Below are positions 11,956 through 37,348 of a stretch of DNA of 64,000 bases, in pieces. This DNA is from Oculina patagonica (lineage: Eukaryota): assembly GCF_052425735.1 (NCBI RefSeq), contig NC_135761.1, positions 49,166,001 to 49,230,000 on the forward strand, given 5' to 3'. Position numbers and translations under genes: made by a program. Every line of letters starts with the position of its first letter. Positions within the stretch are counted from its first letter, which is position 1. The notes below the pieces were generated by a model. The model saw only the letters and a program-made list of their open reading frames with translations, was not told the origin of the DNA and did not search any database.

Positions 11956-14900
11956 ATGGACGCCATGGCTTTTATGTTTTCCGTGGCTCGAGAGAATAGC
12001 TCCAACGTGCTGGAATTCGACCCAGAATGTATAATGCAGGAAGATTTAATGAGCTTGAGTAGCAAATTTCCGTTGATTCCTGGTTCGCAGAGGTCCATAA
12101 CATTTTGTACAACCAGTATCTCGCAAAAGGTGAGTGTATGTATTAGAAAATCACCGACTTAGGAAGGGTACGAATTTTGAAGCGCCTTTTGTATTTATTT
12201 TGGAAAGCGCGCGGTGGCAAAGCATTTCGCGGAAAGTTAAGTTTTAGAAAAAAAAAATCGAGGCCTGAAGCTACTTTTTAATAACTTATTTAACAAGAGA
12301 ACGTTTCGGAATGTATACTCAATAATAAGCGAAAGAAATTACGACTCTTCGAAGTAGATGGCGCTAAATCAAATAACTATATTTTTTTACCTTGCGGTCT
12401 TTGTGGTATTCATTTTCTCTTTTTGCAGTTATAAAGTGAGAATAAATTTTCCATTTTGTTTACAATTTCAGCTGCGAGAAATACCAGCCGATGCAGATTT
12501 TGATCTAACAGATCCTTACAATCCTCCGCCACGCTACAACGTGTTACACGATCCTCATCTAAAGGAATACTTTCAGAATCAAGCCATGCGACGAAGACTT
12601 GTTGAAAAAGGTGTGCTACTTGTGTGTTTTTGCTAAAAAATTGACCATCTTTATTATTTACTACGATTCTAGATTCGTTTAACACTTTGCAAATCTTTAG
12701 CCGTGAAGTTCCGGAGGACATGAAAACCTTTAAGAGCTTTGAGAAATTTAGTGTATCTGTAAGTTGTGGTTAAAATTATCTTTGGTAGTTTTTGAAACCA
12801 TATTCATTATCATAATCTAAAACAGTGGGAAGAGGAATCCGCACATTGTACCCCAGACATGCAATAAGAAAGCTATGTTGATTATTTTTGGGACTTACGG
12901 CAAAGAGCCGTCTTAAAGTCCCTCCTGTCGTTTCGTCAAGGTGACTCAATGATGAAATAACTTCAAGTTTTAACGTTTGTTATTTCCTAATAGACAGATG
13001 AAAATAGATAACCACCTTCAAAAATCGCAGTAGACCTCAAAATGATAGTTTCTTAGGATTGAAAAACACCAAAGGGTTAACGATAAACCAAAACTGGAAA
13101 AGATTGGCAAAATTAAGACGAATTACGACCGGTGAGCTTGAAATAAAGGACATAAAGAGAAATCCGCTAAATCTTTTGTATTTGGAGTGTTACCTTGGGC
13201 TTATAATTTATTTCACCCACATAACTTATTTCTTCGTTTCTGCGTTCAAGGTTTTATTACAAATAGCGGCTTCGTCAAATGCACGCTTCTTGAATTCAAC
13301 ATGTTTCGACAATGGATCAGAAAACTTAAATTGGATCGAATACATCAAGACTATCGGAGAGAACGCCAGATGGAATTACAACTCTGGAAAGAGAGACAAG
13401 CTCGTGAACAGCTTCTGCGAGACGAAGAACTGTACAGTATTGTGCGAGAGCGAGAACAGAAAGCCAGAGAGATGAAAGAGCGAGGCGCCAAACGCCGCGC
13501 GGTAGATCGGCGCAAATATCTAAAACTGCAAGAGATAGATCGAAGAAGGAGGGAAAAATACATAGAAGACATGAGGCAAAAAAGAGATCTAAATGAGAGT
13601 AGACGAGATAAGAATCTTGCCGAAAAACAAGTGGCAAAAGCTAAGAAAGAAGAAAAGGTTCGTATGATGTTGTATTTTTATACGTAAAAATTCGATTGTA
13701 TCCAGAGTAAGAGAGACTGAAAGATTGAGAAAAAAATCCATGGTGATGATGTAACTCTATAGAGCTCCATGTGATGTCTTCGATTGGTTGTTGCTCGCTT
13801 TAAAATTTTGGCGGGCAAAAACAACCAATCAGGCAATTTGTTTTCTGCAGCCTCGATCCCAGGCTCTCTCTCCTTTTCCTCCCTCAACGACAAGGGTGGA
13901 AAGGAGAGAGAGCCTGGATCGAGGTTGTGTTTTCTGTAGAGTTGACGTCACCAGTATTCGCCTGCGAACAGGCTTTGCTGGAGAGCGCTCGGCCGGCGGG
14001 GTACGCGCTTCGCGCCGTCGGAGCGCTCTCCGAAATCTCCGGAAAGCCTGTTCGCAAGCTACACCAGTATGGATTTTTTTGGGTCGATTTGAGCGGGGAA
14101 AGAATAAGGCAAACATGTATCCCTCTCTGGCCACGAAACTAAAATTACTTGGCTTTCTTCTTTCTTCTTTGTTTAATGGGCCATTTACAGCTTATTGTCA
14201 CAAAATAACACCTTGCTGGAGGGCAAGCTACGCACTAGGACATTAAAAACAAAGCGACCTGCTTGACATTCGTTTATTTTGAATGTCCCAAAGCGTAGCT
14301 TATCCTCCAGCAAAGTGTTATTTTGTTCCATGTAACTGTACGCTTCAAAGGGCCCATTTTAAGCGCTATGCTAAAAAAATCCTTGCGTTTTGACAAAACA
14401 ACTTTGACCACACTTTGTAAGTGCCAATGAAGAAGCTCTGTATGTTATTGGAAGTCATCGCAATGGTTTAACACCGTTTTCTTTTCTAGGTGAATAAAAT
14501 TAAAATCCGTCTTCTCGTGAAGCGAAGTTCTGAGGACAAAAAGAGAGAAAACATGTTACAGAAGAGGAGACAAACATTAATCGAGGAAAAAGAACGAAAG
14601 GTATCCTGTCTATTTAAGTGATTATATGCAATCGAGCCCGCCATAATGCGATTTTCGATTGAGTGTCGTAAAATCAAAACCAAGGAAATCACTCTGGCCA
14701 ATCACAAAGAACACAGACAATCCAGTGAACCAATCACAACTCGAAGCAAATACCTTTTGGTTCTGATTTTACTTCTGATTGGTTAAGAATCTGGCGCGAG
14801 TTTTTTTTAGCCAATCATTAAGCTTAGTAATGCAAAACGAAAGCAAATGCGAATATCTTTCGACAGTCAAGTGAAATTTGTTCTATTCTACAGGACCCAT

Positions 14901-17900
14901 TTGTTTCGTGGAACAATAACATTTATAATGCGCAAATCTCATGAAATGTTTAAATGCGCACGACAAGATTAAAAACGGAATAAAAAAGCTAAAAAGCTTA
15001 AACAACAGCAAAAGTAAACTTACAATAATTTAAAAACAACTTTGATAAAAATGCTTTTTGAAAAAGGTAAGTTTTTAGCTTGGCTTTAAAAATACAAACA
15101 CTGCTGGTGCTTCTTGATTATGTCAAATGGTAGCGCATTCCATAGTTTTGGTGCGGCACAGGTAAAAGAGCGGTCACCGAGGGGAAGCTTTTGATTTAAA
15201 ACGCAGATAACTAAGTGAAAGTTTAACGCTAAAATTCTTAAGATTACAAAGCTATCAAATGGCGAAACAGTTGATTATCAACTGGAAGTTAAAAAATTTT
15301 AAATAGACTAGCGTGGCGTATTTTGAACAGCTGTCGTTTCGAGCGTTACTCTTTCGTTGCAGCTTTGTAACTTTGCTCCGACAAAACGCTGACGCTCGAA
15401 ATCTCAGCTTTTTAAAATCCACTTCGTCGGTTTATTTACCATTATCAACTTCCAGTTGCCAATTAACTCTCTCTCCTCCGCAGAGACCTCTTTTTTCGTT
15501 GGGAAATGGGGAGAGGCGAAAAGTAAGCGCGCGGAGCCTGGGTGAGAGCAACGAAAGCGCGCGGGGGTTTCGCCTTTCCTGTCGTCCCCGCGCTCCCCCA
15601 TTTTTCATTTTTCGTGTTTTTTCGCCTCCCCCATCCACTGAAAGAGCCTCTGCGGAGAAAAGAGAAATTTTACTGATAATTAATTAACTGATTCTTTTGT
15701 GTGTTTTTCAATTTTTTAGTTAAAAGAGAACTGGAAGCGTCGTTGCTCACTGTCACTGGCCCGACAGGAGGAGAAACGAAAACAAGAGGAAGAAGAAAGA
15801 TTGGAGCACGAAAGAAATGTGGCGAGAAGAACATCTATTGTGGCGCAGCAACGGCGCAAGAGTCGAGGTATCAAATACTGGTCTTATGTCAACTAGTACC
15901 GTAATGATTCGATTTAGCGCCCTCCTTCCAATAAGTGCCCCCTTCCGAATAAGCGCCCCCCTTCGAATGTGTTTTTGTCAATAAGCGCCCCTATTCCAAT
16001 AAGCGCCCCCATTCTAACAAGCGCCCCCATTCTTATAAGTGCCCCTATTCTAATAAGCGCCCCCTATTGTGGATAACTGCCCCTAGTGAAGTCATCGACT
16101 TAAGTAGATAAACGCATGAACATTTACCATACCGTGCATGTATGTATTTACTGCTAAAATGAACAATTCTTTTAAAAGTAGCTGAACTTGCAACAATTTG
16201 CTGCTGTTACAGTTTCTGTTATTGTTAGTTATCTTAATATTTATTAAAGTTTTGTTTTGAACATTTGGTTATTTCTCGAAAAATTAAATAAGCGCCCTGT
16301 CCCGAATAAGCGCCCTGTCCCGAATAAGCGCCCTCTCTTGAGGTGCAAAAAGTAAATAAGCGCCCCGGGCGCTAAATCGAATTATTACGGTACTCTACTT
16401 TAATTCATGCACGCGGGAAGTTGGAAGTTGGAAGAGGACAAGACAAGCTAGCCTGCGAGAACTTTTTTTGCGCCTCGACGGCTCGTTTTTTCGCTTGCGC
16501 GTGAAGCAAATGTGAGCTGCCTTGTAGGCCAAGAGCAGCCAAGGAAACTTAATTCCTTTATTTCAGTGTCTTTAAAGCTTTTACAGTCAAACCGGATGTT
16601 CTTTTGATGGGAACTCTGCAATGTTGCGGCGCAATGTTCCAATATTGATTGACAGTTTGCTCGTCGCAACTTGCAACTTTCAATTCAAATTTGCCTGAGC
16701 AAGTTGCCAAGTTCCGGTTTTCATTTTTCCCGTATGAAACATAATAATTCTACCTGTGTCTCAAAGAAAGATGAAATAATTGTCCTATGGTCGACTGCTT
16801 ATCATCAGACTGCGATAAATTAGCGACAGGCTTAGTTGAAATCGCCAAACTTTGAATTTCGCTTAAAAATTCAAATTTGCTCCGCAAGTTACGGCCTACA
16901 ATTGTAATTTTGAAGCGTAATTCCTAACTTAGCAATGTTAACTAAGCCTGTCGCTTATTTCTCGCATTCTGTTGATGAGCAGTCGAATAAGGGGCAATTA
17001 TTTTCTGTTTCTTTGAAACAAAGGTGGTACAACCTCGTTTTATACGGCAAAATTAAAACCGGAACTTGGTAACTTGCTCAGGCAAATTTGAATTGAAAGT
17101 TGCAAGTTGCGACGAGCTAACTGTCAATCAATATTGGAACACTGCGCCGCAACATTGCAGAGTTCCCATCAAAAGAACATCTGGTTTGACTGTAATGATT
17201 CATGGTAATTGATAATCCCTTACTTTGAACAACCACACGCGGTACGATTATTGCTCACAACGCTCGCATGCCTGCGCAAGGAATTGTTTTAGCTTGCAAT
17301 CAAATTAATCCACAACTTTCTTGCGTTTGTGGCGACCAATCTGTTAGCATGTCGCATCTGACAGTCAGTAAAGCAAAAGTTGCACCACCAGTCTAAAGCA
17401 TGGGCTATACATGCACCTGTATCCTGTATAGGAGATGAGTTAAATGTAGGCTTAAACGAATGTTAGAATCCTACACTCGATTCTGTTTTTTCTTTGCCTT
17501 GTAGTGCATCTTGATATGTGCTTACAAAAGCGACGCAGCACACTGGAAAAACAACATCAACAAGCGGAGAATTTCCTGGAGAAAATAAGAGAGAAGAAGC
17601 TGAAAGACTTGGAGAGATGGAAACAGAAACACGCGCGCATGCGAGAGAGACGTCGGTACCAGGTTAGTTTGGGGTGGGGTGGGGGTACGGGAATCTGAAT
17701 CTACCCCCTTCCGTACTTTGAACTCACGTTACTTCATGTTACTTTGTTGATTCTGTCATAAGACTTTCCTCCTTACCTTATGTGTTCTGGCATAAAAATA
17801 AACCCTTTCACAAGGCAATAAGGCAATTTGTTTGATAAATTTTCAAGTCTTCTTTGCAAATGTTCAGTGCTATCAAAATACTTGCATCTTTAATGTAAGA

Positions 17901-20900
17901 ATTGTAGTTATCGTAAAAATAAGCCATAGTTAGACTTTCTTAAGCCTGGTTTTCACTAGCGACGCAAGCACAAGCGCAAGCACAAGTGCAAGAATAACAG
18001 CTCTTATTTCACCGTGAAAACGGCTTCGACTCAAGCAAAAGCACAAGCGCATTGCAGTTTAATGCTTGTGCTTGTGCTTGCGGAAAGCACAAGAACAAGG
18101 ATCAAAATTTGTCCTTTTTGCGTGATTGCGCTTATGCTTGCGCTTGTGCTTGCGTCACAAGTAGTGAAAACCAGACTTTACAGTTTATGGTTTTCAATTT
18201 GTTAATTAGGACTATTATTCTCCGGGAGTATGATTCTCTAGTTATGAGTTAGGACCATTGCTGAATTATCGTTTGGTGGCAAATAAGACTCGCGCTTGTT
18301 TCGCGATTAGAATTTATTGAGCTCGCGCGTCACACTCGTGTATATCATAGCGTTACCTCTGAGGAACAGTAACATAAAGCATTTGTACAATGACAGTGCT
18401 TCATAGGAAATCAAAACAATCCATTAGGAAAAATTCGAAGCAACAATTTACCTGTGGCAAAAAGCAATGCTTCAGTTTCGACCGGATAAACAACACTTAG
18501 CCGCTGCTAGTCTGCAAATACGCAATCTGTATTCGTAGTCCAAGCAGATGCTTTCCACAGGCTACTTGCAAAGATTTCAGGATCTTTATGCACGCCCCCT
18601 CCCCTAGGCCTTTCTCGATTATGCTAGTAAAACTGGCATTTAATGCTACTAGAAATTCCCGCATAAAGCCAGAAAAATGCTAAAATAATGCCTGATTTCT
18701 TTTAAAAATGCCACTTGAATTCCAAAGAATGCTTTATTTTATTTCAAACAAAACGTACAAACTCTTACATTAAATGCTCATATCAACAACAGGTGATACT
18801 TAATAATTGTTTGTTTATAAAAAAAATATAAAATAAAATAAAATGAAAAAACATATGTAAAAAAAATTAAAAAATATATTTTTTCAAAAAACTAAAAAAA
18901 ACACACACAAGTAACGCAACACAAGTACACAAGTAACACAACGCACAAACAGTCGAAACAGACAGAAAACAATCAAATTAAGTAATCAAAATTGTGAAAC
19001 TTTAGGATTATTTCTCCTTCTGAGTGCTGAAATCTGGATCACTGTCATGAAAAATGACAGAAAATGCTAGAAATTCTTTTTCAAGAAAAAACGAAAAAAA
19101 ATGCTCGTTTTCCCAAAAAATGCCGAAAAAAATGCTAGCATAATCGAGAAAGGCCTACCCTCCCCTCGCCCCCCCCCCCCCCGTCTATCATGTGTTACTT
19201 TTCGTCACATCTGGCGTGGAAACTCCACCGTGTTTCAAGAGCTGTGCTAATTGGTCGCTTGGTGTGCTCCTTAGGTACATAGAGGCTCGTTGCAAAGCAA
19301 GGCAATTGACCTGGACCACCAGGACAGACGCAGGTCTCGTTTGTCAAGCGTCTGGGATTTAGAGTCTTCATTGCGAAGTGAATTTGGAATCGAAGATAAC
19401 GTGGTTTACAGGTAATGGAGTACGAGAGCATTATTGAGTAACATATTGCAAAACTGAGGTAACGAACCTCCTGCGGTGTCAAGAACCTTGTGATAGCACG
19501 TAGCCTGATAAAATTTTCTCTGGTCGATCCCATTTTGTATCAATCTTCTCCATTCCCTCCCCGCGAAGGCGTGTACGAAAACATTTTTTTTATTACGGGG
19601 AGGCTCCGGCCGCACCTCCTCGTTCCAAACCCTTACCCTTTCATATGCCATGTTTGACAGAAAAGGTAACCCGCTCGCATACCCTCAATAAATAAGGTAG
19701 CTCTTACAATACAATACAATACTTTATTTAACCACGCGACACCTAGGAGCGCAAGCGCTCGTTAAAATGTGTGCGTGAACGCAAAATTATATAATTATTA
19801 ATATAATCAAATACCTACAGAAGAGATACTGCTTACTCTTAATTTTTCACTTGAATACCCCTGAATACTTAGATGAATTGACCGTACGGTGGGTGTGTTC
19901 GAGATATTCCCGACTCTTTGCAATACTCCCACTCGTGAAATCCCTACCTTTTTATGCCAACAGCGTGAAAAATGTATCCCTTTTGTGAAGATCCTCCCCG
20001 TATGGTTAACATCGAAGAAGGAAAAGAAATAACCCAAATAATGCATCAACACAATAAATTGAAGTAAAATCTGTCACTCTGGTGCGCGTTATTCCACTAA
20101 ATCTCTTTCACTGGTCTGACTTTCTTCTCTGCTTTTTAGCGGTGTTGTTTTCGCGGGAAGGAAGACCAAACGTGATGCTAGACAAAGTGTCCAGCTTGAA
20201 GCGGTAAGATCAGCTGATGTCTTCTCTTGACCTTTTTTTTATCAAATTCAAGCAGACAGGTTGTGAGAATGAGTAATCTGAACATTTGAGCAAAGTCGTC
20301 TTGACTTGAAGGACGCGAAGAACCATTACCTTTGGACAAGACGTGTTATTTCCTAAAGCTTCAAAATTCTAAAGTTTTCAGCATCGATCACGTTAAAACG
20401 CACAGACGATGAAGGAAGCACCGTGATCAGGAAGATCGTTTACTGACAGATCTGTTTTGTCAGCAATGTTTCAAGATACTAAACAATGTGATTGGAATGA
20501 AACGATTTTATTACGTAGTTGAAAATTATAACCATTTTTGTTACTTGACATAGGTCGATTTGTAATTTCAGTAAGAAGAAGCAAGCACCGATTTCCAGGC
20601 GACCTTAAATTTACAAATTACGTTGAAAGTTCTATCCTTCCAACCTTGCTTTCTTTTTAGTAGTAGCGCATTAGCTTATCTAGATTGTAATTTTTCCTTG
20701 AAATGTTAGGTTGCAGAGGAAGGAACTTATGAAGAAACAGACGAATCAGCCAGGTTTGAGAAACTGTGGTCAAGGCTGGAGGCAGAGCTGGCCTTGCGCG
20801 AGAGAGTTCACTACGTCGTTTTTGGCATAATATCAAACGCTGAAGAGGTTTTGAATCAACGAGAGAGGCAGGAAACCTACAAGAAAATTCCAAAGTACGT

Positions 20901-23900
20901 TCAGGGAATTGTAGACGCCGCGCAGGGTATCTTGGCCAATGAACAGATTAATGACGGCGACGTAAGAGCAAAAGTAAGAAACTATATCCTACAGGTCATT
21001 GAAGACGCGTCTCTTGATATTGATGATTCTGGGTTGTTGCTATCTTCGGACGCGAAAACAAGACGAAAGGCTCGAGAGATCGTTACAAACGCTATTAACA
21101 GTGCTAGAGATGTGTCCTTTCGCAACACTGCCAAAGAAGTTGTAGCAGCTGCTATTAGAGGTGCTGCTCAAAAATCCGCCCAGGACATTTCTAAAGATCT
21201 TGCTGAAAGCGCGAAGGACGTCGTTGCGGCTGCTATTATATCAGCGACGTGCTATAGCAAGGACGCCCATCAGGTGATTGCAGCGAGATCTCTTGCGGTT
21301 GATGCCGCAAAAGCAGCGGAAGCTTCATTAGAACGGTTATACGGCGTTAAGCGTGAGCTAGATGTTGGTAAGCAAAGGGATGCTCGTAAAATCTCGGCAA
21401 GCCTGGATAGGTGCGCAAAAGATGTTGCAGCTGCGTCTATTATTTCTGCTACAAGGTCGTTGGAAAGAGTCATTGATAGGGATAAATGTGATGTGATTGC
21501 GGCGCGAACGTTGGCGACTGACGCACTGACAGCAGCCAAAGCTTCCCTCGAAAGGTTGTACAGCGTTAAATTTGAGGAAGAAGACGATGATCAGGATTAT
21601 TACAAAGCCGTTTCCAAAAGCCTCGTAAAATCGGCAAAAGAGATCGGTCAAGCTGTTATCAGTCCAGCTGCAAGATTACTTGAGAAAACTACTGGAAAGG
21701 ACGATCTTGAAGATTTGACAGCGCAGTGGCTTGCAAATGACGCGATTCAAGCAGCGAGGGCGTCGTTAGAGAACCTTTATGGCATTAAAGTTGAAGAGAA
21801 GGATCAGAACGAGCAAGCCGCTAAGGATATTGCAGCCGTCGCTGTGTTGTCAGCCGCACGTTCTTTGCAAAGAGACTTGATAAGCAACGATCGTGATTTC
21901 GCAATGGCGGCACGAGGTTTGGCTAGCAACGCTTTGGATTCTGCAAAGGCATCTGTCGATTGGATCTACAGTACGAAAGTTGCAACAGAAACCGATATTG
22001 AAGGAAAGGAAAACAAAATGTATCTAGATTTTGACCAGGTTGCAAAAGACATTGCAGAGGTCGCTGTCGATTCGGCAACAAGATCCTTGGAGAGGATCGC
22101 GGATAAACACGAATGGGATTTGACAGCAACAACTCGCAAGCTGGCAAACGATGTGCTTAACTCTGCGAAGGCATCTTTGGAGAAGCTCTATGGAATCAAG
22201 TGCGAGCCTGAAGAGGTACCAATACTGGCATCTCAAGAAACGTCGCAGAGCTCTTTGGAATATCCCATTCCTTCAACAAAGGGTTCGTCGGAAAGTGTGA
22301 AAGGACACGAGCGGGAGTTGTGGACAGCAGCACAAAGTCTTGCTAAGGATGCCTGGAAATCAGCAACAGCATCATTGGAACGCCTGTACAATATTGCAGA
22401 TCAGATGGAAGACAACATCAAGCACACTGCCTTGGACATTTCCAAAACCCTAATGGATTCTTCTGGAAACCTTCGGCAAAAACTCGAGAAGGAAGGCCTC
22501 TCAGTTGCAGCTCGAGATCTTGCATGTAATGCAATTGTGTCGGCCGCCAAAGCCTTCCCGAAACTGCAGGAAGACGAAACGTCTTTGCAGGACATTGCTG
22601 AAAGTGACACGAGCCTGCTGAACTCTGCAGCAAAGGTGTCCACGGTTTCTGCTCGAGCTTCGTTGGGGGAACTCTTTGATCGAGGTTTCATTGGTGGTCT
22701 GGAGTTGGAAGAAGCTACAGGCTACTTGGCAACCCATGCAATGGTATCTGCTGAAAATCTGCTCGACACGTTGCAAGACGAAACTGCAACGTTGGATCTG
22801 GATTTGGAGATTTGCAAAGCCGCCACCGAGCTGGCATCACGTGCAGTTGTGTCAGCCGAGGGGTCAGTAGCTCGCTTGGCAGGGGAACACCAGACTTCAA
22901 ATGACCGTGATACTAACAACGGGAACTTGTTTTGGAAGGTGACCACTTACGTGGAAGGCCTTATTAACGGTGCTTTGAGGCATCTTGGGGCAGATGGATA
23001 CATTGTCGACATCAGTGACGATCAAGAACAATACGACGTCCTTACGCATGATCAGGCTCATTTAGCTGATGCAGAATACGGCACACACGTGGAAGATATT
23101 TACCAGAGAGAAATCCTGGCATTGAAAGCTTCAAGAATTGTGAACGATGTTGTCGAGAATGCCATGGAAATTGTAAAAACCAGGATGACAAATGAGTCGT
23201 TTTTTGCCGGTCAATCCGTTGGAGATGGCGGACCGCGCAATGCCCGATTCGCTCGCCGAAGAAGCAGTTCCGTGCACTTCAACGAAAAGTCAATCTTCCG
23301 TTCTCGCCGGGACAGCTTGAGCATTGCGAATAGGCCTCCTACTCCACGTTTTATGAAGGGTCGTGCCGGCTCCGTTGTTGCACAAGAAATTGACGAACTC
23401 GAGAGAGAATTGGCGATTCCATCGGAAATTGAGGTAACGGCAACTAATGCATCGAGCAGTGGACCTGTTCCACGACGTTCGTCCGACCCTGGGCTAGAGT
23501 TTTACTCTCAAGATGTTGCGTCTTCTCGACCAGACCCATCGGCATCCGACTCCAAGATTGACATCAACGAGCAAGGGACTTCCCTGAACGAGAAACTGTC
23601 CGTGTACGATATCATCAAAAGGCGAGAAGAGACAGCTAGCTGCGAGATCTCCCCATGCGAGTCATATGTGGTCCTCCCACAGCTAAACCCATCGGAACGT
23701 TCCCTGATCGCCGCTCGAGTGGAGTCTTATGAGGTGTTGTGGAAACAGAGGAAGTCAACCCCGTCGGTGACAAGTCTGCCATCTTTGTCCCCCAAAGGCT
23801 CATTTGTTACCAGCGAGAGTGTAGAACAAGCTCATTCTCGTAAAGAATCAAAGAGTCGTTCGGTGCCTTCATCATCTCGTCTACCAGACATTAGTAGCTC

Positions 23901-26900
23901 CACGTCCAAAATCTACAGTAACTCACCGAGTGCAAGTTCACTTAAAGGCACATCTGGGCATCCAAAACGAACTTCATCGCAGAAGCTCAAGAAATCCCCC
24001 AAGGCATCCCCTAAGACTTCGAGGGAATCTGTTAAACTGAATACGAAACCATCGACGGATAAAGGCTTGCAGTCACCCCGTGCCTCGGTGGGGGAGATAA
24101 AAGTGACTTCTGGCACTTCCTTGCGTAAAAACGAGGGCGGCTCTCGACGAAGTTCCTCGAATAATGTGACCGTGGTTACTCCAAAAGGTTCCGTAAAGGA
24201 CATTCCCTTTTCACAGCGTGGCTCAAACACGAAGGTGGTCCTTTCTCCGAGTGGCTCACAGACGAAAGCAACTTTGTCTCAACGTACGTCTACAAAGGAA
24301 GCAACAATGTCCAAAAGTACACCATCTCAAAATGTCATCAAATCGTCTCCACAAAGTTCTAAACTGTTTGCACGCGCTTCTACGGAAAAAGCGATATCTT
24401 CGTCACGCACGTCTTTGGGAAAAGCGTCTCCACGAGGGTCACGGGAGAGGGCAGTGCTGACTCCACGTGAATCGACAGAGAGAGCAGTTTTGGCTCCGCG
24501 TGGTTCAAACCAGAAAGTCACATCATCACCACGCACCTCCAGAGAAAAGGTAGATCTATCATCAAGGACATCGAAAGGAAACGTCACGTTGTCTCCACGT
24601 GCATCTGCTGGTGACACTGCATTGTCTCCACGTGCTTCCAAAGGAAAAATCACGAAGTCTCCACGTGCGTCTACTGAGAACGCGGCATTGTCTCGAAATG
24701 ATCCTAAAGGAAATGCTACGACGGGTAATAAGGATCAATCACCACGCGCATCAACAGAGAACGCAGCATTATCTCCACGTGCCTCCAAAGGAAAAATCAC
24801 GCAGTCTCCACGTGCGTCTACCAACAACGCGGCATTGTCTCCAAGTGTTTCCAAAGGAAAAGCCACGACGGAAAATAACGATCAATCACCACGCGCATCA
24901 ACCGAGAACGCAGCATTGTCTCCACGTGTTTCGAAACAAAAAGTCATTCAGTCTCCACGTGCGTCTACTGAGAACGCAGCATTGTCTCCACGTGTTTCCA
25001 AGGAAGTGTCTGTGCAGTCTGCACGTGCGTCTTCCAAGAACGTGGCAGTATCTCCACGTGCTTCTAAAGGGAAAATTTCGCAGTCTCCACGTGGTTCTTC
25101 TGACAACGCAACACTATCTTCACGTGATTCCAAAGGAAATGTCTTGCAGTCTTCACATGCGTCTACCGAAAACGTAGTATTAACCCCACGTGCTTCTAAC
25201 GAAAACGCCATGCCGTCTCCTTCGCCTTCCAAGGAAAAACTCACGCCATCTCCTCGTGGTTCTGCTGAAAAGGTAGCATTATCTCCACGTGTCTCCCAGG
25301 GAAAAGTCACGCAGTCTCCACGTGCGTCAGCTGAAAGAATCGCACTTTCTTCTCGTGAGTCCAAAGAAAAAGTTGAGGGGCCTTCTTCATTTTCTACAGC
25401 AAATACCACACTATCTTCTAAATCAGAAGAGATTGTACCACCGAAAGCGAAAGACGACAGTGCATCATCTCCGAGTGTAGAACAGCCCGCTTCTTTACAG
25501 CGTATCTCTTTGCATAAAGTCTCGCCGACTGTTACACAATCTGATCAAGAAGTTTCAGCTTCGCCCAAAACAACCAAAAGCATGGTCAAAACACCTTCAA
25601 ATCATTCTGGCAAACCTTTGGATTCGCAAGATACCATGAAGAAAACTGAATCAACTGAGAAATCTAAAACTAATTTGAAAACACTTTCGCATTCTGGTGA
25701 GAAACTGACACAAGAGTTGGCTTCTTCAGCTCAAACGCCTGAGAAAGCAGCTGAACTCGACAGGGGCTCGGCAGAGATAGAGGGTAGACCACCAGCACCA
25801 ATACCGGACGTCCCCCAACCCCAAGAGGCAGGCTCAGAAGGAGATCGCTTTGATGCGAACAAAGGTGAAGCGGGTGGAGAATCCATTGAACCGAAGAACC
25901 TCGAGTTTAACAAGAGCTCAAAGAGAGCTGATTACAGCCTAGAGAGACTTATCCTGGACAAACGATTGACTCCCGAAGGCGCCGAAGCCGATACACGTCC
26001 AGCATCTAGCGCTGATGTTGCAGCCTCAAGAAAGCACACTGATCCATCAGCAGCACATAAAACCATCCCTGCCCAACTCGAGTCAAGCAAGTGCGTGAAA
26101 TCCTCCTTGACGGAAGCACCTGTTTCCATATCGGGTTTGCCGAGATCTTCTCGAGAAAAGACTGCATTGAAGGAAAGCGATGTTGAGAAAGAAGTCTTCA
26201 CTGCAAGGAAAAAACCCGAAGGTGAAGACCGAAGCGAGTTTGAGGGTGTGACGTCTGGTGCTGGGAACGCTTTGTCGAAGAAGGAGGAAGAAAAGAAAGG
26301 GTCAGTTAGCAAAATATCAGATGCCTTGACCAAGGAAAACCAGGTTGTTCAGCGTCCTGCTACAAACCAAAAAGACAAGAAAGATTTTGAAGGCCACCCC
26401 ATTTATAGAAAGGTGAGCGTTTCACGGTCCATTCACGACACAGTTGATGATATCGTACAGAGAATGTTAGATACAGCTGATGAGCCCAACGCAGGTTTCG
26501 AGGATTCCCGTCCTACGGGTTCGGGATCGCGCGAAAGAATGAGGCGGGACAGCGAGATAAACTTTGATGCGCCGAGAGGGTTTGGCAGAGAGAGAATGCT
26601 TCCCACTGGCAAGGTTTCCAGAACAGTGATGGAAACTGTAGATTTTATGGTCCAAAGTGTTTCATCTTCAGATGAGAGGAGACCTCGCCAAAGCTCTGGA
26701 AGACGGTTTAGCGGAGGTGGGTAACACTGAATCAAATTTCAAAACGCAGCACACAAATTGAACTTCTTTCAAACTAATATGCTATACAGTCAACTCTCTT
26801 TTAACAGACACTTCTTAAAGATGCACACCTAGTGTTGGTCCCGTCTCTGACGTTTTTTAGTCATTTTACTGTTACTAAACTTGCTATAAGACGGAAACCA

Positions 26901-27696
26901 CTTTAAGGCAGGTGGTTGGAACCGGTCCCAACGGTGCCCGTAAAAAGAAAGTTGATTGTTCCACTCGGATATGTGCTTACCAGTTTTTTTCGGATGGAGT
27001 GTATATTCCATGCCAATCACAAGGATTAGTAGCCTTATATCCTTTTATTCGGGGAAATATGTAATTTATAGTAAGCAAATTGTCTAAATTCACAGCACAC
27101 CATCAATTATATAAGAGGTTTTAACCATCAAATAAGAGGTTTACACCATTAAATAAGAAGTTGTCATTTCTATTACAAGCTCGATGTCCCTGAAGATGCC
27201 AACCTGAGTTGCATTACGTTATGACTTTTGCCTTTAATCTTTCTTAGGCATTACAAGAACAACCTCTTCAAAGGAAAAACTCCCAAAGGGTGCCACCACC
27301 TCAGGTCAAGATATTTCTTGTGTCTACGGAGTCAGCCCTTCACCTCCTACAGGCCCTCAGCCGAAACTTCCATCTCCCAAACGATCCCGACTGAGGGCCA
27401 CGTCTTCTCAAGACTCCCTGGGGATCCGAGCTACGCAGTCGGATTCAAGCATACTCAGTTCATCCAGTGATAAAGCCGCTGACCTCAGACCTAAGGTGTC
27501 CGGCGCATGGCTTGACAGCGTCATCGGTGCAGGTGGAGACGCGTCTCTCGGGTCCCAGTCCCCAAAGAGACCTTCCTCGAGCCCAACCTTCTCGCAGCAA
27601 AGACGTCGTTCTTCAGAGAGGCTCTTAGTGAAGAATTCTTTGGAGGGAGTTTCCCTTGCAACGGATGGTTCTGTGGGAAATATAATTAACTCCTAA
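11956..27696 (+). CDS. FSIP2: Fibrous sheath-interacting protein 2-like (FSIP2 N-terminal domain, coiled coil, giant repeat exon), about 2530 aa, 8 exons
   Basis: Phase-consistent exons: 11956-12129, 12472-12610, 13251-13657, 14490-14600, 15720-15867, 17505-17662, 20710-26716, 27248-27696 (7593 nt). The N-terminus KFPLIPGS...FCTTSISQKL...FDLTDPY...YNVLHDPHLKEYF...LVEKGFITNSGFVKCTLLEFNMFRQW matches the conserved FSIP2 N-terminal block as I recall it (KLPxIPGS...LSDPY...LHDPHL...GYIT...VxCTLxExNxYRQY). Candidate AATAAA at 27962. Homology is evident only in the N-terminal part. Confidence 0.8.
13848..13927. mobile_element. 80-bp MITE with 9-bp TSD
   Basis: TIR CAGCCTCGATCCCAGGCTCTCTC / GAGAGAGCCTGGATCGAGGTTG; TSD TGTTTTCTG. 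Confidence 0.85.
13958..14061. mobile_element. 104-bp MITE with 9-bp TSD
   Basis: TIR TCGCCTGCGAACAGGCTT / AAGCCTGTTCGCAAGCTA; TSD CACCAGTAT. Confidence 0.85.
14175..14358. repeat. About 180-bp foldback element
   Basis: The arms aatgggcc..acaaaataacaccttgctggagg..aagctacgc..ggacatt and aatgtcc..gcgtagctt..cctccagcaaagtgttattttgt..gggcccatt are reverse complements around a short loop. Confidence 0.7.
15899..16390. mobile_element. Tc1/mariner-type MITE with TA TSD
   Basis: TIR CCGTAATGATTCGATTTAGCGCCC / GGGCGCTAAATCGAATTATTACGG; TA on both sides; about 11 internal AATAAGCGCCC repeats. Confidence 0.88.
16584..17192. mobile_element. 609-bp foldback element (arms about 295 bp) with TA TSD
   Basis: CAGTCAAACC...GGTTTGACTG termini; the whole element is self-complementary around a loop of about 20 nt near 16880-16898. 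Confidence 0.88.
17943..18177. mobile_element. PIF/Harbinger-type (Tourist-like) MITE
   Basis: TIR AGCCTGGTTTTCACTA; TSD TTA on both sides; internal GCAAGCACAAGC repeats. A related, interrupted copy lies at about 59395-60235. Confidence 0.8.
18607..19155. mobile_element. MITE with TA TSD inserted in a C-rich tract
   Basis: Perfect 21-bp TIR GGCCTTTCTCGATTATGCTAG / CTAGCATAATCGAGAAAGGCC; TA at 18605-06 and 19156-57. Confidence 0.88.
20710..26716 (+). CDS. Giant 6007-nt internal exon of the FSIP2-like gene (copy A)
   Basis: Acceptor ttag|GTT at 20710 is in frame with ORF 20794..26724. Donor GGA G|gtgggt at 26716 (phase 1) joins the open frame of exon 27248-27696. Confidence 0.85.
21070..23163 (+). 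repeat. Degenerate coding repeat of about 65-75 aa (AKDxAxxxxxSAxRSLER...AAxxLAxDAxxxAxASLERLY), at least 6 copies plus flanking amphipathic helices
   Basis: ASLERLYG, ASLERLYS, ASLENLYG, ASVDWIYS, ASLEKLYG and ASLERLYN recur at regular spacing in ORF 20794..26724. Confidence 0.8.
24427..25380 (+). repeat. Coding tandem repeat: about 28 units of 11 aa / 33 nt (S-P-R-A-S-x6), two units extended to 16 aa
   Basis: SPRASTENAAL and SPRASKGKITQ-type units alternate; DNA core tctccacgtgc. The counterpart in copy B is at about 34025-34981. Confidence 0.9.
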
Positions 27697-28257
27697 ACGA
27701 GAATGTTTTAATTAAAAATACTTTAACCTTTTTGGGGGAAAGCTCTCGGTTTGAATGAATTTATACATTATAAAAATATCTTGATTGCCAAATTTCTTAT
27801 TTTTTCATCAATGTCATTTCTAACTTTTACTTTGAGTATTTATTGCTAAAAGCAGAATTTTATTGACGATTTTTCTTTTTCATATGCCGCTTGCATTTTT
27901 AATATTTTTCTTTCTTTGTAATCTAAATCTGACAGATATCATTTAAAATAATTTGAAGATAAATAAAATTCATTTAAATGCTCGTCGTTTGCTTATGATT
28001 CCCCATTTAGTTAAAAAACCTATCGAAAGACTGTAGTGGTGATGGGAAAAGATTATGCATTTGCATTTCCAAGGGACTGTAAATGGAAAAAAGGAGTGCA
28101 AATTGCACCAACTGGCGAGACTGCAAATTCAGCCAGATAGTAGCAAAACGGAGGATAAGCTCGAAGGACCTCCAGATTTCAAACCCAGTGTCCTAAACCA
28201 CCGTAAAAGCTCTATTAGACCCACTCTCAAATAAGCTTCCCTATGGAGGTTATTTTT

Positions 28258-30307: not shown

Positions 30308-33300
30308 GTTGCAGAGGAAGGGACTTATGAAGAAACAGACGAATCAGCCAGGTTTGAGAAACTGTGGTCAAGGCTGGAGGCAGAGCTGGCCTTGCGCGAG
30401 AGAGTGCACTACGTCGTGTTTGGCATAATATCAAACGCTGAAGAGGTTTTGAATCAACGAGAGAGGCAGGAAACCTACAAGAAAATTCCAAAGTACGTTC
30501 AGGGAATTGTAGACGCCGCGCAGGGTATCTTGGCCAATGAACAGATTAATGATGGCGACGTACGAGCAAAAGTAAGGAACTATATCCTACAGGTCATTGA
30601 AGACGCGTCTCTTGATATTGATGATTCTGGGTTGTTGCTATCTTCGGACGCGAAAACAAGACGAAAGGCTCGAGAGATCGTTACAAACGCTATTAACACT
30701 GCTAGAGATGTGTCCTTTCGCAACACTGCCAAAGAAGTTGTAGCAGCTGCTATTAGAGGTGCTGCTCAAAAATCCGCCCAGGACATTTCTAAAGATCTTG
30801 CTGAAAGCGCGAAGGACGTCGTGGCGGCTGCTATTATATCAGCGACGTGCTATAACAAGGACGCCCATCAGGTGATTGCAGCGAGATCTCTAGCAGTTGA
30901 TGCCGCGAATGCAGCGAAAGCTTCGTTAGAACGGTTATACGGCGTTAAGCGTGAGCTAGTCGTTTGTAAGCAAAGGGATGCTCGTAAAAGCTCGGTAAGC
31001 CTGGATAGGTGCGCAAAAGATGTTGCAACTGCGTCTATTATTTCTGCTACAAGATCATTGGATAGAGTAATTGATAAGGATAAATGTGATGTGATAGCGG
31101 CGCGAACGTTGGCGACTGACGCACTTACAGCAGCAAAAGCTTCCCTCGAGAGGTTGTATAGCGTGAAATTTGAAGAGGAAGACGATGATCAGGATTATTA
31201 CAAAGCCGTATCCAAAAGCCTTGTAAAATCGGCAAAAGAGATCGGTCAAGCTGTTGTCAGTCCAGCTGCAAGATTACTTGAGAAAACTACTGGAAAGGAC
31301 GATCTTGAAGATTTGACAGCGCAGTGGCTTGCAAATGATGCGATTCAAGAAGCGAGGGCGTCGTTAGAGAACCTTCATGGCATTAAAGTTGAAGAGAAGG
31401 ATCAGAACGAGCAAGCCGCTAAGGATATTGCAGCCGTCGCCGTTTTGTCAGCCGCACGTTCTTTGCAAAGAGACTTGATAAGCAACGATCGTGATTTCGC
31501 AATGGCGGCACGAGGTTTGGCTAGCAACGCTTTGGATTCTGCAAAGGCATCTGTCGATTGGATCTACAGTACGAAAGTTGCAACAGAAACCGAAATTGTA
31601 GGAAAGGACAACAAAATGTATCCAGATTTGGACCAGGTTGCAAAAGACATTGCAGAGGTCGCTGTCGATTCGGCAACAAGATCCTTGGAGAGGATCGCGG
31701 TTAAACACGAATGGGATTTGACAGCAACAACTCGCAAGCTGGCAAACGATGTGCTTAACTCTGCAAAGGAATCTTTGGAGAGGCTCTATGGAATCAAGTG
31801 CGAGCCTGAAGAGGTACCAATACTGGCATCACAAGAAACATCGCAGAGCTCTTTGGAATATCCCATTCCTTCAACGAAAGATTCGTCACAAAGTGTGAAA
31901 GGACACGAGCAAGAGTTGTGGACTGCAGCACAAAGTCTTGCTAAGGATGCCTGGAAATCAGCAACAGCATCATTGGAACGCCTGTACAATATTGCAGATC
32001 AGATGGAAGACAACATCAAGCACACTGCCTTGGACATTTCCAAAACCCTAATGGATTCTTCTGGAAACCTTCGGCAAAAACTCGAGAAGGAAGGCCTCGC
32101 AGTTGCAGCTCGAGATCTTGCATGTAATGCAATTGTGTCGGCCGCCAAAGCCTTCCCGAAACTGCAGGAAGACGAAACGTCTTTGCAGGACATTGCTGGA
32201 AGTGACACAAGCCTGTTAAACGCGGCAGCAAAAGTGTCCACGGTTTCTGCTCGAGCTTCGTTGGGGGAGCTCTTTGATCGAGGTTTTATTGGTAGTCTGG
32301 AGTTGGAAGAAGCTACAGGCTATTTGGCAACCCATGCAGTGGTATCTGCTGAAAATCTGCTCGACACGTTGCAAGACGAAACTGCAACTTTGGATTTGGA
32401 TTTGGAGATTTGCAAAGCCGCCACCGAGCTGGCATCGCGTGCAGTTGTGTCAGCCGAGGGGTCAGTAGCTCGCTTGGCTGGGGAACACCAGACTTCAAAT
32501 GACCGTGATACTAACGACGGGAACTTGTTTTGGAAGGTTACTACTTACGTGGAAGGCCTCATCAACGGTGCTTTGAGGCATCTTGGGGCAGAGGGATACA
32601 TTGTCGATATCAATGACGATCAAGAACAATTCGAAGTCCTTACGCATGACCAGGCTCGTTCAGCCGATGTGGAATACGGTACACATGTTGAAGATATTTA
32701 CCAGAGAGAAATCCTGGCATTGAAAGCTTCAAGAATTGTGAACGATGTTGTTGAGAGTGCCATGGAAATTGTAAAAACCAGGATGACAAATGAGTCGTTT
32801 TTTGCCGGTCAATCCGTTGGAGATGGCGGACCGCGCAATGCCCGATTCGCTCGCCGACGAAGCAGTTCCGTGCACTTCAACGAAAAGTCAATCTTCCGTT
32901 CTCGCCGGGACAGCTTGAGTATTGCGAATAGGCCTCCTACTCCACGTTTTATGAAGGGTCTTGCCGGCTCCGTTGTTACACAAGAAATCGACGAACTCGA
33001 GAAAGAATTGGGGATTCCATCGGAAATTGAGGTAACGGCTACTAATGCATCGAGCAGTGGACCTGTTCCACGACGTTCGTCCGACCCTGGGTTAGAGTTT
33101 CACTCTCGAGATGGTGCATCTTCGCGACCAGACCCGTCGGCATCTGATTCCAAGATTGACGTCAACGAGCAAGGGACTTCCCTGAACGAGAAACTGTCCG
33201 TGTACGAAATCATCAAGAGGCGAGAAGAGACAGCTAGCTGCGAGATCTCCCCATGCGAGTCATATGTGGTACTTCCACAGCTAAACCCATCGGAGCGTTC

Positions 33301-36300
33301 CCTGATCGCCGCTCGAGTGGAGTCTTATGAAGTGTTGTGGAAACAGAGGATGTCAACCCCGTCGGTGACAAGTCTGCCATCCTTGTCCCCCAAAGGCTCA
33401 TTTGTTGCCAGCGAGAGTGCAGAACAAGCTCATCCTCGTAAAGAATCAAAGAGTCGTTCGGTGCCTTCATCATCTCATCTACCAGACATTAGTAGCTCTA
33501 CGTCCAAAATCTACAGTAACTCTGCTAGTGCAAGTTCACTTAAAGGCACATCTGGGCATCCAAAACGAACTTCATCGCAGAAGCTTAAGAAATCCCCCAA
33601 GGCATCCCCTAAGACTTCGAGGGAATCTGTTAAACTGAATGCGAAGCCATCGACGGAAAAAGGCTTGCAGTCACCCCGTGCCTCAGCGGGGGAAATAAAA
33701 GTGACTTCTGGCACTTCCCTGCGTAAAAACGAGGGCGGCTCTCGACGAAGTTCCTCGAATAATGTGACCGTGGTTACTCCAAAAGGTTCCGTAAAGGACA
33801 TGCCTTCTTCACAGCGTGGCTCAAACACGAAGGTGGTCCTTTCTCCAAGTGGCTCACAGACGAAAGCAACTTTGTCTCAACGTACGTCTACAAAGGAAGC
33901 AACAATGTCCAAAAGTACACCATCTCAAAATCTCATCAAATCGTCTCCACAAAGTTCTAAACTGTTTGCACGCGCTTCTGTAGAAAAAACGATATCTTCG
34001 TCACGCACTTCTTTGGGAAAAGCGTCTCCACGAGGGTCACGGGAGAGGGCAGTGCTGACTCCACGTGAATCGACAGAGAGAGCAGTTTTGGCTCCGCGTG
34101 GTTCAAACCAGAAAGTCACATCATCACCACGCACCTCCAGAGAAAAGGTAGATCTATCATCAAGGACATCGAAAGGAAACGTCACGTTGTCTCCACGTGC
34201 ATCTGCTGGTGACACTGCATTGTCTCCACGTGCTTCCAAAGGAAAAATCACGCAGTCTTCACGTGCGTCTACTGAGAACGCGGCATTGTCTCCAAGTGTT
34301 TCTAAAGGAAAAGCCACAACGGAAAATAAAGATCAATCACCACGCGCATCTACCGAGAACGCGGCATTGTCTCCACGTGCCTCCAAAGGAAAAATCACGC
34401 ATACTCCAGGTGCGTCTACCAACAACGCGGCATTGTCTCCAAGTGTTTCCAAAGGAAAAGCCACGGCGGAAAATAACGATCAATCACCACGCGCATCTAC
34501 TGAGAACGCAGCATTGTCTCCACGTGTTTCGAAACAAAAAGTCATTCAGTCTCCACGTGCGTCTACTGAGAACGCAGCATTGTCTCCAAGTGTTTCCAAG
34601 GAAGTGTCTGTGCAGTCTGCACGCGCGTCTTCCAAGAACGTGGCAGTCTCTCCACGTGCTTCTAAAGGAAAAATTTCGCAGTCTAAACGTGGTTCTTCTG
34701 AGAACGCAACACTACGTTCACGTGTTTCCAAAGGAAACGTCATGCAGTCTTCAAATGCGTCTACCGAGAACGTAGTATTAACCCCACGTGCTTCTAACGA
34801 AAATGCCATGCAGTTTCCTCCTTCGCCTTCCAAGGAAAAAATCACGCCATCTCCTCGTGGTTCTGCTGGAAAGGTAGCATTATCTCCACGTGTCTCCAAG
34901 GGAAAAGTCACGCAGTCTCCACGTGCGTCTGCTGAAAAGATGGCACTTTCTTCTCGTGAGTCCAAAGAAAAAGTTGAGGCGCCTTCTTCATTTTCTGCTA
35001 AAAATACCACACCACCTTCTAAATCAAAAGAGATTGTACCACCGAAAGCGAAAGACGCCAGCGCATCATCTCCGAGTGTAGAACAGCCCGCTTCTTTACA
35101 GCGTATCTCTTTGCATAAAGTCACGCCGACTGTTACACAATCTGATCAAGAAGTTTCAGCTTTCCCCAAAACATCCAAAGCTATGGTCAAAACACCTTCA
35201 AGTCATTCTGGCAAACCTTTGGATTCGCAAGATACTGTAAACAAAACTGAATCAACTGAGAAATCTAAAACTGATTTGAAAACACTTTCGCGCTCTGCTG
35301 AAAAACTGACACAAGAGTTGGCTTCTTCAGCTCAAACGCCTGAGAAAGCAGCTGAACTCGACAGGGACTCGGCAGAGGTAGAGGGTAGACCACCAGCACC
35401 AATACCGGACGTCTCCCAGCCCCAAGCGGCAGGCTCAGAAGGAGATCGCTTTGATGCGAACAAAGGTGAAGAGGGTGGAGAATCCATTGAACCGAAGAAC
35501 CTCGAGTTTAACAAGAGCTCAAAGAGAGCTGATCACAGCCTAGAGAGACTTATCCTGGACAAACGATTGACTCCCGAAGGCGCCGAAGCCGATACACGTC
35601 CAGCATCTAGCGCTGATGTTGCAGCCTCAAGAAAGCACACTGATCCATCAGCATCACATAAAACCATCCCTCCTCAACTCGAGTCAAGCAAGTGCGTGAA
35701 ATCCTCGCTGACGGAAGCACCTGCTTCCATATCGGGTTCGCCGAGATCTTCTCGAGAAAAGACTGCATTGAAGGAAAGCGATGTTGAGAAAGAAGTCTTC
35801 ACTGCAAGGAAAAAACCCGAAGGTGAAGACCGAAGCGAGTTTGAGGGTGTGACGTCTGGTGCTGGGACCACTTTGTCGAAGAAGGAGGAAGAAAAGAAAG
35901 GGTCAGTTAGCAAAATATCAAATGCCTTGACCAAGGAAAACCAGGTTGTTCAGCGTCCTGCTACAAACCAAAAAGACAAGAAAGATTTTGAAGGCCACCC
36001 CATTTATAGAAAGGTGAGCGTTTCACGGTCCATTCACGACACAGTTGATGATATCGTACAGAGAATGTTAGATACAGCTGATGAGCCCAACGCAGGTTTC
36101 GAGGATTCCCGTCCTACGGGTTCGGGATCGCGCGAAAGAATGAGGCGGGACAGCGAGATAAACTTTGATGCGCCAAGAGGATTTGTCAGAGAGAGAATGC
36201 TTCCCACTGGCAAGGTTTCCAGAACAGTGATGGAAACTGTAGATTTTATGGTCCAAAGTGTTTCATCTTCAGATGAGAGGAGGCCTCGCCAAAGCTCTGG

Positions 36301-37348
36301 AAGACGGTTTAGCGGAGGTGGGTAAAACGCAGCACACAAATTGAACTTTATTCAAACTGATATGCTATATAGTAAACTCTCTTCTAACTTGTGACAGACA
36401 CCTCTAAAAGACGGACACCTAGTGTCGGTCCCGTCCCAGCAGTTTTTCAGTCATTTTACTGTAACTAGACTTGCTATTAAACGTACACTTCTCTAAGACG
36501 GATAGTTTGAGCCGGTCCCACCGGTACCCGTCTTAGAGAGAGTTGACTGTACCACTCGGAGATGTGCTTACCAGTTTTTTTGGATGGAGTCCATATTCCT
36601 AGCCTGCGTCGCAGCCGGACGTGTCACAAAACCTCGGTATAACTATACCAGGGTTTAGTTCGTCTGCAATGCGGGCTACCATATTCCATAACCATCACAA
36701 GAATTGCTCTTGTAGCCTTATATCCTTTTATTCGAGGAAATATATAGTTTATAGTAAGCAAATTGTCTAAATTCACAGCTCACCATCAACTAAGAGGTTT
36801 ACACCATCAAATAAGAAGTTGTCAATTCTATTACAAGCTCGATGTCCCTGAAGATGCCAACCAGAGTTGCATTACGTTATGAATTTTGTCTTTAATCTTT
36901 CTTAGGCATTACAAGAACAACCTCTTCAAAGGAAAAACTCCCAAAGGGTGCCACCACCTCAGGTCAAGATATTTCTTGTGTCTACGGAGTCAGCCCTTCA
37001 CCTCCTACAGGCCCTCAGCCGAAACTTCCATCTCCCAAACGATCCCGACTGAGGGCCACGTCTTCTCAAGACTCCCTGGGGATCCGAGCTACGCAATCGG
37101 ATTCAAGCATACTCAGTTCATCCAGTGATAAAGCCGCTGACCTCAGACCTAAGGTGTCCGGCGCATGGCTTGACAGCGTCATCGCTGCAGGTGGAGACGC
37201 GTCTCTCGGGTCCCAGTCCCCAAAGAGACCTTCCTCGAGCCCAACTTCCTCGCAGCAAAGACGTCGTTCTTCAGAGAGGCTCTTGGTGAAGAATTCTTTG
37301 GAGGGAGTTTCCCTTGCAACGGATGGTTCTGTGGGGAAAATAAATTAA
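30308..37348 (+). CDS. Second copy (B) of the last two FSIP2-like exons: 30308-36317 and 36906-37348
   Basis: The 1977-aa ORF 30392..36325 is colinear with 20794..26724, with the same splice sites and no frameshift or stop. No duplicated upstream exons are present. Either an uncollapsed allele or a tandem duplication. Confidence 0.75.
36600..36678. mobile_element. 79-bp MITE with 9-bp TSD, present only in copy B
   Basis: TAGCCTGCG...CGGGCTA termini; TSD CCATATTCC at 36591-99 and 36679-87; single empty site at about 27001-27010 in copy A. Confidence 0.85.

Follow-up and report, generated by a model that had tools for sequence, protein, structure and literature searches.

We analysed a window of 64,000 nucleotides (nt) from the coral Oculina patagonica (NCBI RefSeq assembly GCF_052425735.1, contig NC_135761.1, forward-strand positions 49,166,001 to 49,230,000), and all coordinates below are counted from its first letter. 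Our subject is the giant coding exon of an FSIP2-like gene (20710..26724, + strand; 2004 codons and a stop), whose first half encodes a tandem array of amphipathic helices. The exon is delimited by its open frame, by spliced RNA contigs, and by tblastn. Its frame, read from stop to stop, opens after a TAG at 20707, and the stretch translated from 20794 in an earlier, first-pass annotation is part of it; the RNA places the exon start at 20709/20710, 84 nt upstream of that earlier start. In RNA contigs of two public runs, 19409 is spliced to 20138 and 20202 to 20709, both with GT..AG ends, and because the giant exon is joined in this way, it is real, transcribed, and spliced.

The layout of the gene was obtained by tblastn with the full-length Acropora millepora ortholog XP_044174671.1 (P0017; 2383 amino acids [aa]), which aligns to seven upstream exons within 11956-19409, then to the giant exon, and then to the last exon (27256-27612). 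The upstream exons (+ strand) are 11956-12126, 12460-12612, 13193-13663, 14490-14603, 15720-15866, 17504-17647, 19326-19409, and 20138-20202, of which the last two are also seen in the RNA joints. The 65-nt exon at 20138-20202 appears only in the spliced RNA contigs and was missed by protein alignment with the Acropora ortholog. Judging from the length of that ortholog, the protein would be about 2400 residues long. Its FSIP2-like N-terminus and a coiled-coil stretch rich in Lys, Arg, and Glu are both encoded in the upstream exons.

The 3' part of the gene, with exon 19326-19409, the giant exon, and the final exon, occurs twice in the window, at 19162-28257 and 28758-37900, with a 500-N gap (28258-28757) between the two versions. 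The second version of the giant exon (30308..36325, + strand) holds the same array and is 94% identical at the amino acid level. Divergence between the versions is uneven, at ~1% in the upstream intron and 3-6% in the exon, and the RNA contigs carry two variants at 21400-21618. The second version may be an allelic copy that the assembler set in tandem; alternatively, part of the gene may truly be duplicated, with gene conversion between the copies. Between the versions, the synonymous divergence (dS) is 0.11 in the helical half, and the ratio of nonsynonymous to synonymous divergence (dN/dS) ranges from 0.18 to 0.47 across the exon. The value for the helical part is 0.18, which indicates purifying selection on it.

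The helical half of the exon (20710-23223, + strand) is followed by a Ser/Pro/Lys-rich half. The first-pass annotation had described, in the translation of 20794-23163, short helices with the spacing small-x-x-hydrophobic-hydrophobic-x-x-hydrophobic-hydrophobic-x-x-Ala, mostly paired within a repeat of about 70 aa. It proposed that they might make the protein a multivalent docking site for dimerization/docking (D/D) domains, in the manner of A-kinase anchoring proteins (AKAPs), which hold protein kinase A (PKA). The helices it quoted are present where it placed them (e.g., AREIVTNAINSA at 21070-21105 and ASRIVNDVVENA at 23128-23163). The pairing was borne out as well: a repeat profile built from four units of the window protein (units 2-5) detects five complete units (~73 residues each) and a half unit, at residues 154-216, 218-289, 290-362, 368-425, 426-499, and 530-562 (counted from nt 20710). 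Over residues 1-838 of the exon the spacing pattern has 14 matches, against 1.0 ± 1.0 matches (maximum 5) in 2000 composition-preserving shuffles, and 0 times in the 1166-residue C-terminal Ser/Pro/Lys-rich half. A Hundsrucker-type AKAP pattern was used beside this count. The 14 matches are homologous duplicates of one motif and not independent events, so the enrichment shows a repeat rather than 14 separate coincidences.

Each full unit consists of two helices, A and B. Both are forms of a single 18-residue motif, A-[KR]-x-[ILV]-A-x-x-A-[IV]-x-[SA]-A-x-x-S-[LI]-E-[RK], and they align in register by column statistics (47 two-unit segments, 94 units). The array contains about a dozen copies of the motif, and degenerate single copies are found further on. 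All of the elements lie on the + strand. A helix that precedes the array (AREIVTNAINSA, 21070..21123) has a similarity score of 29 to the AKAP reference peptide AKAP-IS (P=0.02). Unit 1 (21169..21357; profile E=5e-14) is made up of helix A AKDVVAAAIISA and helix B ARSLAVDAAKAA...ASLERLYG. Unit 2 (21361..21576) matches at E=2e-36, being itself among the four units from which the profile was built; for its counterparts in other corals, the E values are about 1e-18 to 1e-28. The remaining profile-building units are unit 3 (21577..21795), whose degenerate helix A, AKEIGQAVISPAARLLEK, has Gly and Pro within the motif; unit 4 (21811..21984), with a short linker; and unit 5 (21985..22206), which is the best conserved across species and served as partner in the docking test described below. 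A half unit with helix B only, AQSLAKDAWKSATASLERLYNI (22297..22395; profile E=8e-8), is followed by three single degenerate copies, ARDLACNAIVSA, TGYLATHAMVSA, and ATELASRAVVSA (22510..22875), inside a conserved single-copy region.

Conservation within the motif is not confined to its hydrophobic positions. Column by column, Ala, Ile, Leu, and Val fall on one conserved face of the helix, and K/R2, D3/D7, S15, E17, and R18 of the motif are conserved as well. In unit numbering, the conserved polar positions are K21, D22, R50, D55, K61, and E65, together with an S-L-E-R tail. Both helices have small residues at a seven-residue spacing (A20/A27/S34 in A and A49/A56/S63 in B), and Ser63 is invariant in 94/94 aligned helix-B copies. 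Helices A and B each retain their type-specific residues in all units and species, and they are joined by a short, conserved loop, whereas the linkers between units are long and acidic.

How widely is this array distributed? It is conserved in stony corals, with 5-9 units per species and with whole units gained or lost between species. A HMMER search with the helical half recovered 12 relatives among 1.84 billion representative proteins, and every named one is from a stony coral (Acropora, Montipora, Orbicella, or Pocillopora); outside stony corals and their close kin the repeat was not found. Within this genome, the repeat profile matches only the window's own two versions, with no paralog. 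AKAP-like helices in an insert of the PARG gene of this genome (L016) are unrelated to the repeat: that stretch has no match to the profile and a single match to the spacing pattern. In a Pfam scan of the protein, no family matched the array. Searches against PDB chain sequences gave two chance-level matches for the helical half (E about 0.5-0.65, to 40S ribosomal protein S8) and nothing for unit 5 or the terminal helix, and the ESM Atlas gave no usable match for the array or the single-copy conserved region. The motif survives strong divergence: the distant homolog P0009, only 26% identical overall, has seven pattern matches against 0.5 expected, and it retains an S-[IL]-E-R tail and the terminal helix. 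The names given to the gene so far go no further than "uncharacterized," "FSIP2-like," "futsch-like," and "adhesin-like." Scaffold proteins with tandem amphipathic helices are an already known kind of feature; this repeat is an undescribed, lineage-restricted helical repeat family.

The helical half closes with a terminal amphipathic helix, REILALKASRIVNDVVENAMEIVK (23107..23178, + strand), which is the most conserved element of all. Its A-S-R-I string is invariant in 11/11 aligned coral rows, and we regard it as the best single anchoring candidate. At 23254..23316 (+ strand), 28 residues (about 30) after the end of this helix and 41 after its motif core, there is a conserved basic cluster with phosphorylation consensus sites, RRRSSSVHF...SRRDS. 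Six other coral orthologs have this cluster too, P0008 and P0009 have it in K/R variants, and the two Acropora/Montipora-type sequences have lost it. RRx[ST] sites number 7 over the whole exon, where shuffles give 2.0 ± 1.4 (P=0.0055). An RVxF-type PP1 docking site at SVHF within the cluster was considered and rejected, as there is no basic residue at the required position. Coral sperm motility is driven by soluble adenylyl cyclase (sAC), cyclic AMP (cAMP), and PKA, and on sperm activation many RRXS/T substrates of up to about 250 kDa are phosphorylated (PMC8640785). The same paper states that the PKA substrates of corals are unidentified and mentions no anchoring protein (PMC8640785). Since the RRx[ST] cluster is conserved and many substrates with such sites are phosphorylated when coral sperm are activated, the protein is a reasonable PKA-substrate candidate and, less certainly, an anchor candidate. 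If there is a true kinase-anchoring site, the terminal helix, with the RRxS sites that follow it, is where we would most expect it.

The C-terminal half of the exon differs in composition. At 24073-25373 lies a Ser/Pro/Lys-rich low-complexity region with 18 SPR motifs, in which tandem DNA repeats of 33/66/132-147 nt encode units of the type SPRAS(T/K)ENAALSPR. By their sequence, the SPR motifs are probably proline-directed phosphorylation sites, and the "futsch-like" and "adhesin-like" names probably go back to this low-complexity stretch. At its end, the giant exon encodes two more amphipathic helices with hydrophobic pairs at four-residue spacing, SIHDTVDDIVQRMLD (26428-26472) and RTVMETVDFMVQSV (26620-26661), each of them conserved in Acropora.

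The FSIP2-like label used in the first-pass annotation rests on the upstream exons only, and the domain that defines the family in Pfam has no match. In a language-model search of the ESM Atlas, residues 40-260 of the Acropora ortholog adjoin FSIP2-named clusters from arthropods and chordates (0.93 and 0.91), and NCBI names coral fragments of the upstream region FSIP2 or "FSIP2-like." The upstream region has a DLTDPY...LHDPHLK...YF motif, which we take to be common to human FSIP2 and treat as a lead, not a test. Pfam FSIP2 (PF15783) has no match in the window protein or in full-length coral orthologs, so by this measure the repeat has no detectable homology to the vertebrate FSIP2 domain.

The likeness of the helices to AKAP helices is real at the level of the pattern. 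They are compatible with an AKAP helix in how their hydrophobic residues are spaced, in being 18 residues long, in having small residues in the middle of the hydrophobic face, and in lying among acidic residues. The pattern count, the column conservation, and the helices in AlphaFold models agree in describing amphipathic helices of 14-18 residues with one hydrophobic face. The AKAP-IS and Ht31 sequences with which the first-pass annotation compared them were correctly quoted. The Pfam RII_binding model, which it had put forward as a check, did not come out in favour of anchoring: RII_binding_1 (PF10522), a short and insensitive model, had no match in the whole protein (E<=1), in ten single helices (E<=10), or in the window when the genome was scanned. 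Pfam AKAP_110 (PF05716) had no match in the protein or the genome, and control genomes were silent too. We also scored similarity to reference peptides by an ungapped BLOSUM62 scan against the best windows of shuffled sequence. Among about 15 helices, the sole one to stand out against AKAP-IS was the helix that precedes the array, at residues 116-132 (KTRRKAREIVTNAINSA), above 95% of shuffled maxima (P=0.02), and none exceeded shuffled maxima against Ht31; the terminal helix reached only P=0.28 despite sharing the string ASRIV with that peptide. Literature searches returned no usable report of FSIP2 acting as an AKAP and no published AKAP regular expression. Taken together, these tests lend the AKAP reading no support and do not refute it.

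Potential docking partners are encoded in the genome, which has at least seven RIIa-type D/D exons; one of these belongs to a full-length RII-like subunit whose gene has no introns. The D/D domains recovered include ones of RI (L003), RII (L001 and L006), and SPA17-like (L004) type. A predicted complex of two copies of the D/D domain of this subunit with unit 5 gave ipSAE values of 0.02 and 0.09, scores that amount to no answer. The intronless gene (L006 511-1686, - strand; G000:C3 near 1215514) encodes a 373-residue RII-type PKA regulatory subunit whose D/D domain and two cyclic-nucleotide-binding regions share a single open frame. The inhibitor site of this subunit is RRRAVAAE, a pseudosubstrate without Ser, and the gene may be a retrogene. 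Two other RIIa-domain exons, L002 (G000:C8:33145372) and L005 (C1:46919785), lie on different contigs and are near-identical (1 difference in 48 aligned residues), a recent duplicate of an R2D2-type gene.

What, then, does the array do? The reading that we favour over its rivals, and hold tentatively, is that this is a coral-restricted helical repeat domain in which the A/B pairs pack on themselves as a hairpin scaffold. One 18-residue helix motif would be used about a dozen times, mostly as A/B pairs in 73-residue units, and each pair would pack as an antiparallel, Ala/Ser-lined hairpin of the "Alacoil" type. In an Alacoil, Ala or another small residue at every seventh position allows very close packing of two helices, as in ROP or ferritin. 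The units would form a flexible helical scaffold of variable length within a large FSIP2-like phosphoprotein, which we infer to be probably associated with a cilium or flagellum, and the AKAP-like spacing would be a by-product of Ala-rich amphipathic packing. We favour this scaffold because small residues recur at seven-residue spacing on both of the paired helices, because the polar positions and the S-L-E-R tail are conserved, because A and B keep strictly to their identities with a short loop and long linkers, and because one helix A contains Gly and Pro. It is favoured also because RII_binding_1 and AKAP_110 have no match and similarity to AKAP-IS and Ht31 is at chance for all helices but one. 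The S-L-E-R tail, which is kept in P0009, is outside any AKAP consensus known to us. A variation of 5-9 units among species is as expected of a modular rod, and we count the dN/dS of 0.18 in the helical part in favour of the scaffold as well.

Several results weigh against the hairpin scaffold. An AlphaFold2 model of the 838-residue helical half (predicted local distance difference test score [pLDDT] 36.8) has helices where expected and no confident tertiary fold. A model of two units with the 47-row repeat alignment (pLDDT 56, predicted template modelling score [pTM] 0.28) has no confident hairpin. The models as a whole (pLDDT 37-56, pTM 0.19-0.28) are too uncertain for fold searches, and the self-contained helical bundle that the first-pass annotation had named as the outcome contradicting its proposal was not observed in them. 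A mutual-information test for antiparallel A-B contacts gave paired-position sums that cluster where chance puts them too. D/D docking would account just as well for the 18-residue motif, for the four-residue spacing of its hydrophobic pairs, and for its acidic flanks, and the low predicted order in the models fits helices that fold only on a partner. What the analysis shows is the repeat itself, with its conservation, transcription, and purifying selection; the hairpin packing, the role as a scaffold, and the location in cilia or sperm are inferred.

The low confidence of the monomer models is also consistent with helices that dock another partner, either copies of the same protein in a filament or bundle or other flagellar scaffolds, in the way that mammalian FSIP2 is reported to bind AKAP4 via two sites (PMC11276731). 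We consider this possible, if rather doubtful. The conserved polar positions would imply a specific, common partner; however, no candidate partner has been identified, the AKAP_110 family went undetected in this genome, the origin of AKAP4 is placed in tetrapods (PMC12083921), and the repeat has no detectable homology to the vertebrate FSIP2 domain. Another reading is the proposal that most helices independently dock D/D dimers (of PKA RI/RII, SPA17, or ropporin type) and so concentrate many of them on each molecule. The pattern is 14-fold over shuffles and is kept under divergence in P0009, the motif is 18 residues long with small residues in the middle of its hydrophobic face, AlphaFold gives no confident self-fold, and the genome encodes at least seven RIIa-type D/D exons. 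More indirectly, RRxS sites are enriched and conserved just downstream, and coral sperm motility runs on sAC, cAMP, and PKA (PMC8640785). However, RII_binding_1 has no match, similarity to AKAP-IS and Ht31 is at chance for all but one of the helices, and one helix carries Pro. In addition, the conserved polar positions and the invariant Ser are unusual, as little conservation is described for the polar face of AKAP helices (PMC12083921). The AKAPs treated in the same paper, AKAP220 and SKIP, hold two sites rather than ten or more (PMC12083921). We therefore regard independent docking by most helices as unlikely, and a true multivalent anchor, in which ten or more helices each dock a D/D dimer (PKA R, SPA17, or ropporin-like), as marginally less likely still.

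Tandem amphipathic helices with flexible linkers also recall membrane- or lipid-binding repeats such as those of perilipin or apolipoproteins. Here, however, the hydrophobic face is narrow and lined by Ala and Ser instead of bulky residues, the linkers and flanks are acidic, and there is no 11-mer periodicity, no set of basic interfacial residues, and no Pfam match, which together make lipid binding very improbable. The hairpin scaffold, docking of D/D dimers, and docking of another partner are not mutually exclusive, because talin shows that an anchoring helix can sit inside a helical bundle, hidden until force opens the bundle (PMC10990152).

Fertilisation in corals depends on sperm motility that is switched on by sAC, cAMP, and PKA (PMC8640785). 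A protein of about 2400 residues that combines an N-terminus like that of FSIP2 with a dozen helices of AKAP pattern and with conserved RRxS sites is a concrete candidate in coral sperm signalling. If the helices do dock D/D domains, AKAP valency would extend far beyond the two-site cases, making this the highest-valency AKAP known, and kinase anchoring would be carried out by a lineage-specific protein outside the bilaterians. As a multivalent anchor, the protein would be a candidate organiser of the coral sperm sAC-cAMP-PKA pathway and, via its RRxS cluster, a candidate substrate of it. If there is no docking, the array would exemplify Ala-rich helical repeats that mimic the AKAP pattern, and it would serve as a negative control for motif-based AKAP prediction.

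Elsewhere in the window, a DDE_Tnp_4 transposase open reading frame (45696-46952, + strand; E=2e-39) adjoins one for a Myb/SANT-like DNA-binding protein (47614-48726, - strand). By sequence, the two are the gene pair of a PIF/Harbinger-type transposon.

Set beside known systems, the coral protein is partly familiar in each comparison. With vertebrate FSIP2 it has in common an N-terminus that falls near FSIP2 clusters in the language-model search, the "FSIP2-like" names given by NCBI, and a large size with a giant exon. It differs in having no PF15783 match, in its length (~2400 residues, against 6907 in human FSIP2), and in a helix repeat seen only in stony corals and close kin. AKAP4 is dated to tetrapods (PMC12083921), and the search of the coral genome for AKAP_110 members detected none. 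AKAP-IS (QIEYLAKQIVDNAIQQA) and the Ht31 helix of AKAP-Lbc are likewise amphipathic helices of 14-18 residues in acidic surroundings, in which hydrophobic pairs recur at four-residue intervals and small residues occupy the middle of the face, and an A-K-x-I start and the ASRIV string recur in the coral helices. In contrast, the coral helices have no RII_binding_1 match, 14/15 of them do not rise above shuffled sequence in whole-peptide similarity, their polar positions and S-L-E-R tail are conserved, and the motif occurs in a dozen copies rather than one or two. AKAP220 and SKIP, which are AKAPs with two sites (PMC12083921), and talin (PMC10990152) resemble the coral protein in having more than one anchoring or anchoring-like helix per protein; their one or two sites are proven, whereas those of the coral are candidates. 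Alacoil hairpins differ from the coral repeat in that its AlphaFold models contain no confident hairpin. In both, paired helices are joined by a short loop, and Ala or Ser recurs at seven-residue spacing, on the coral repeat along both helices of the pair.

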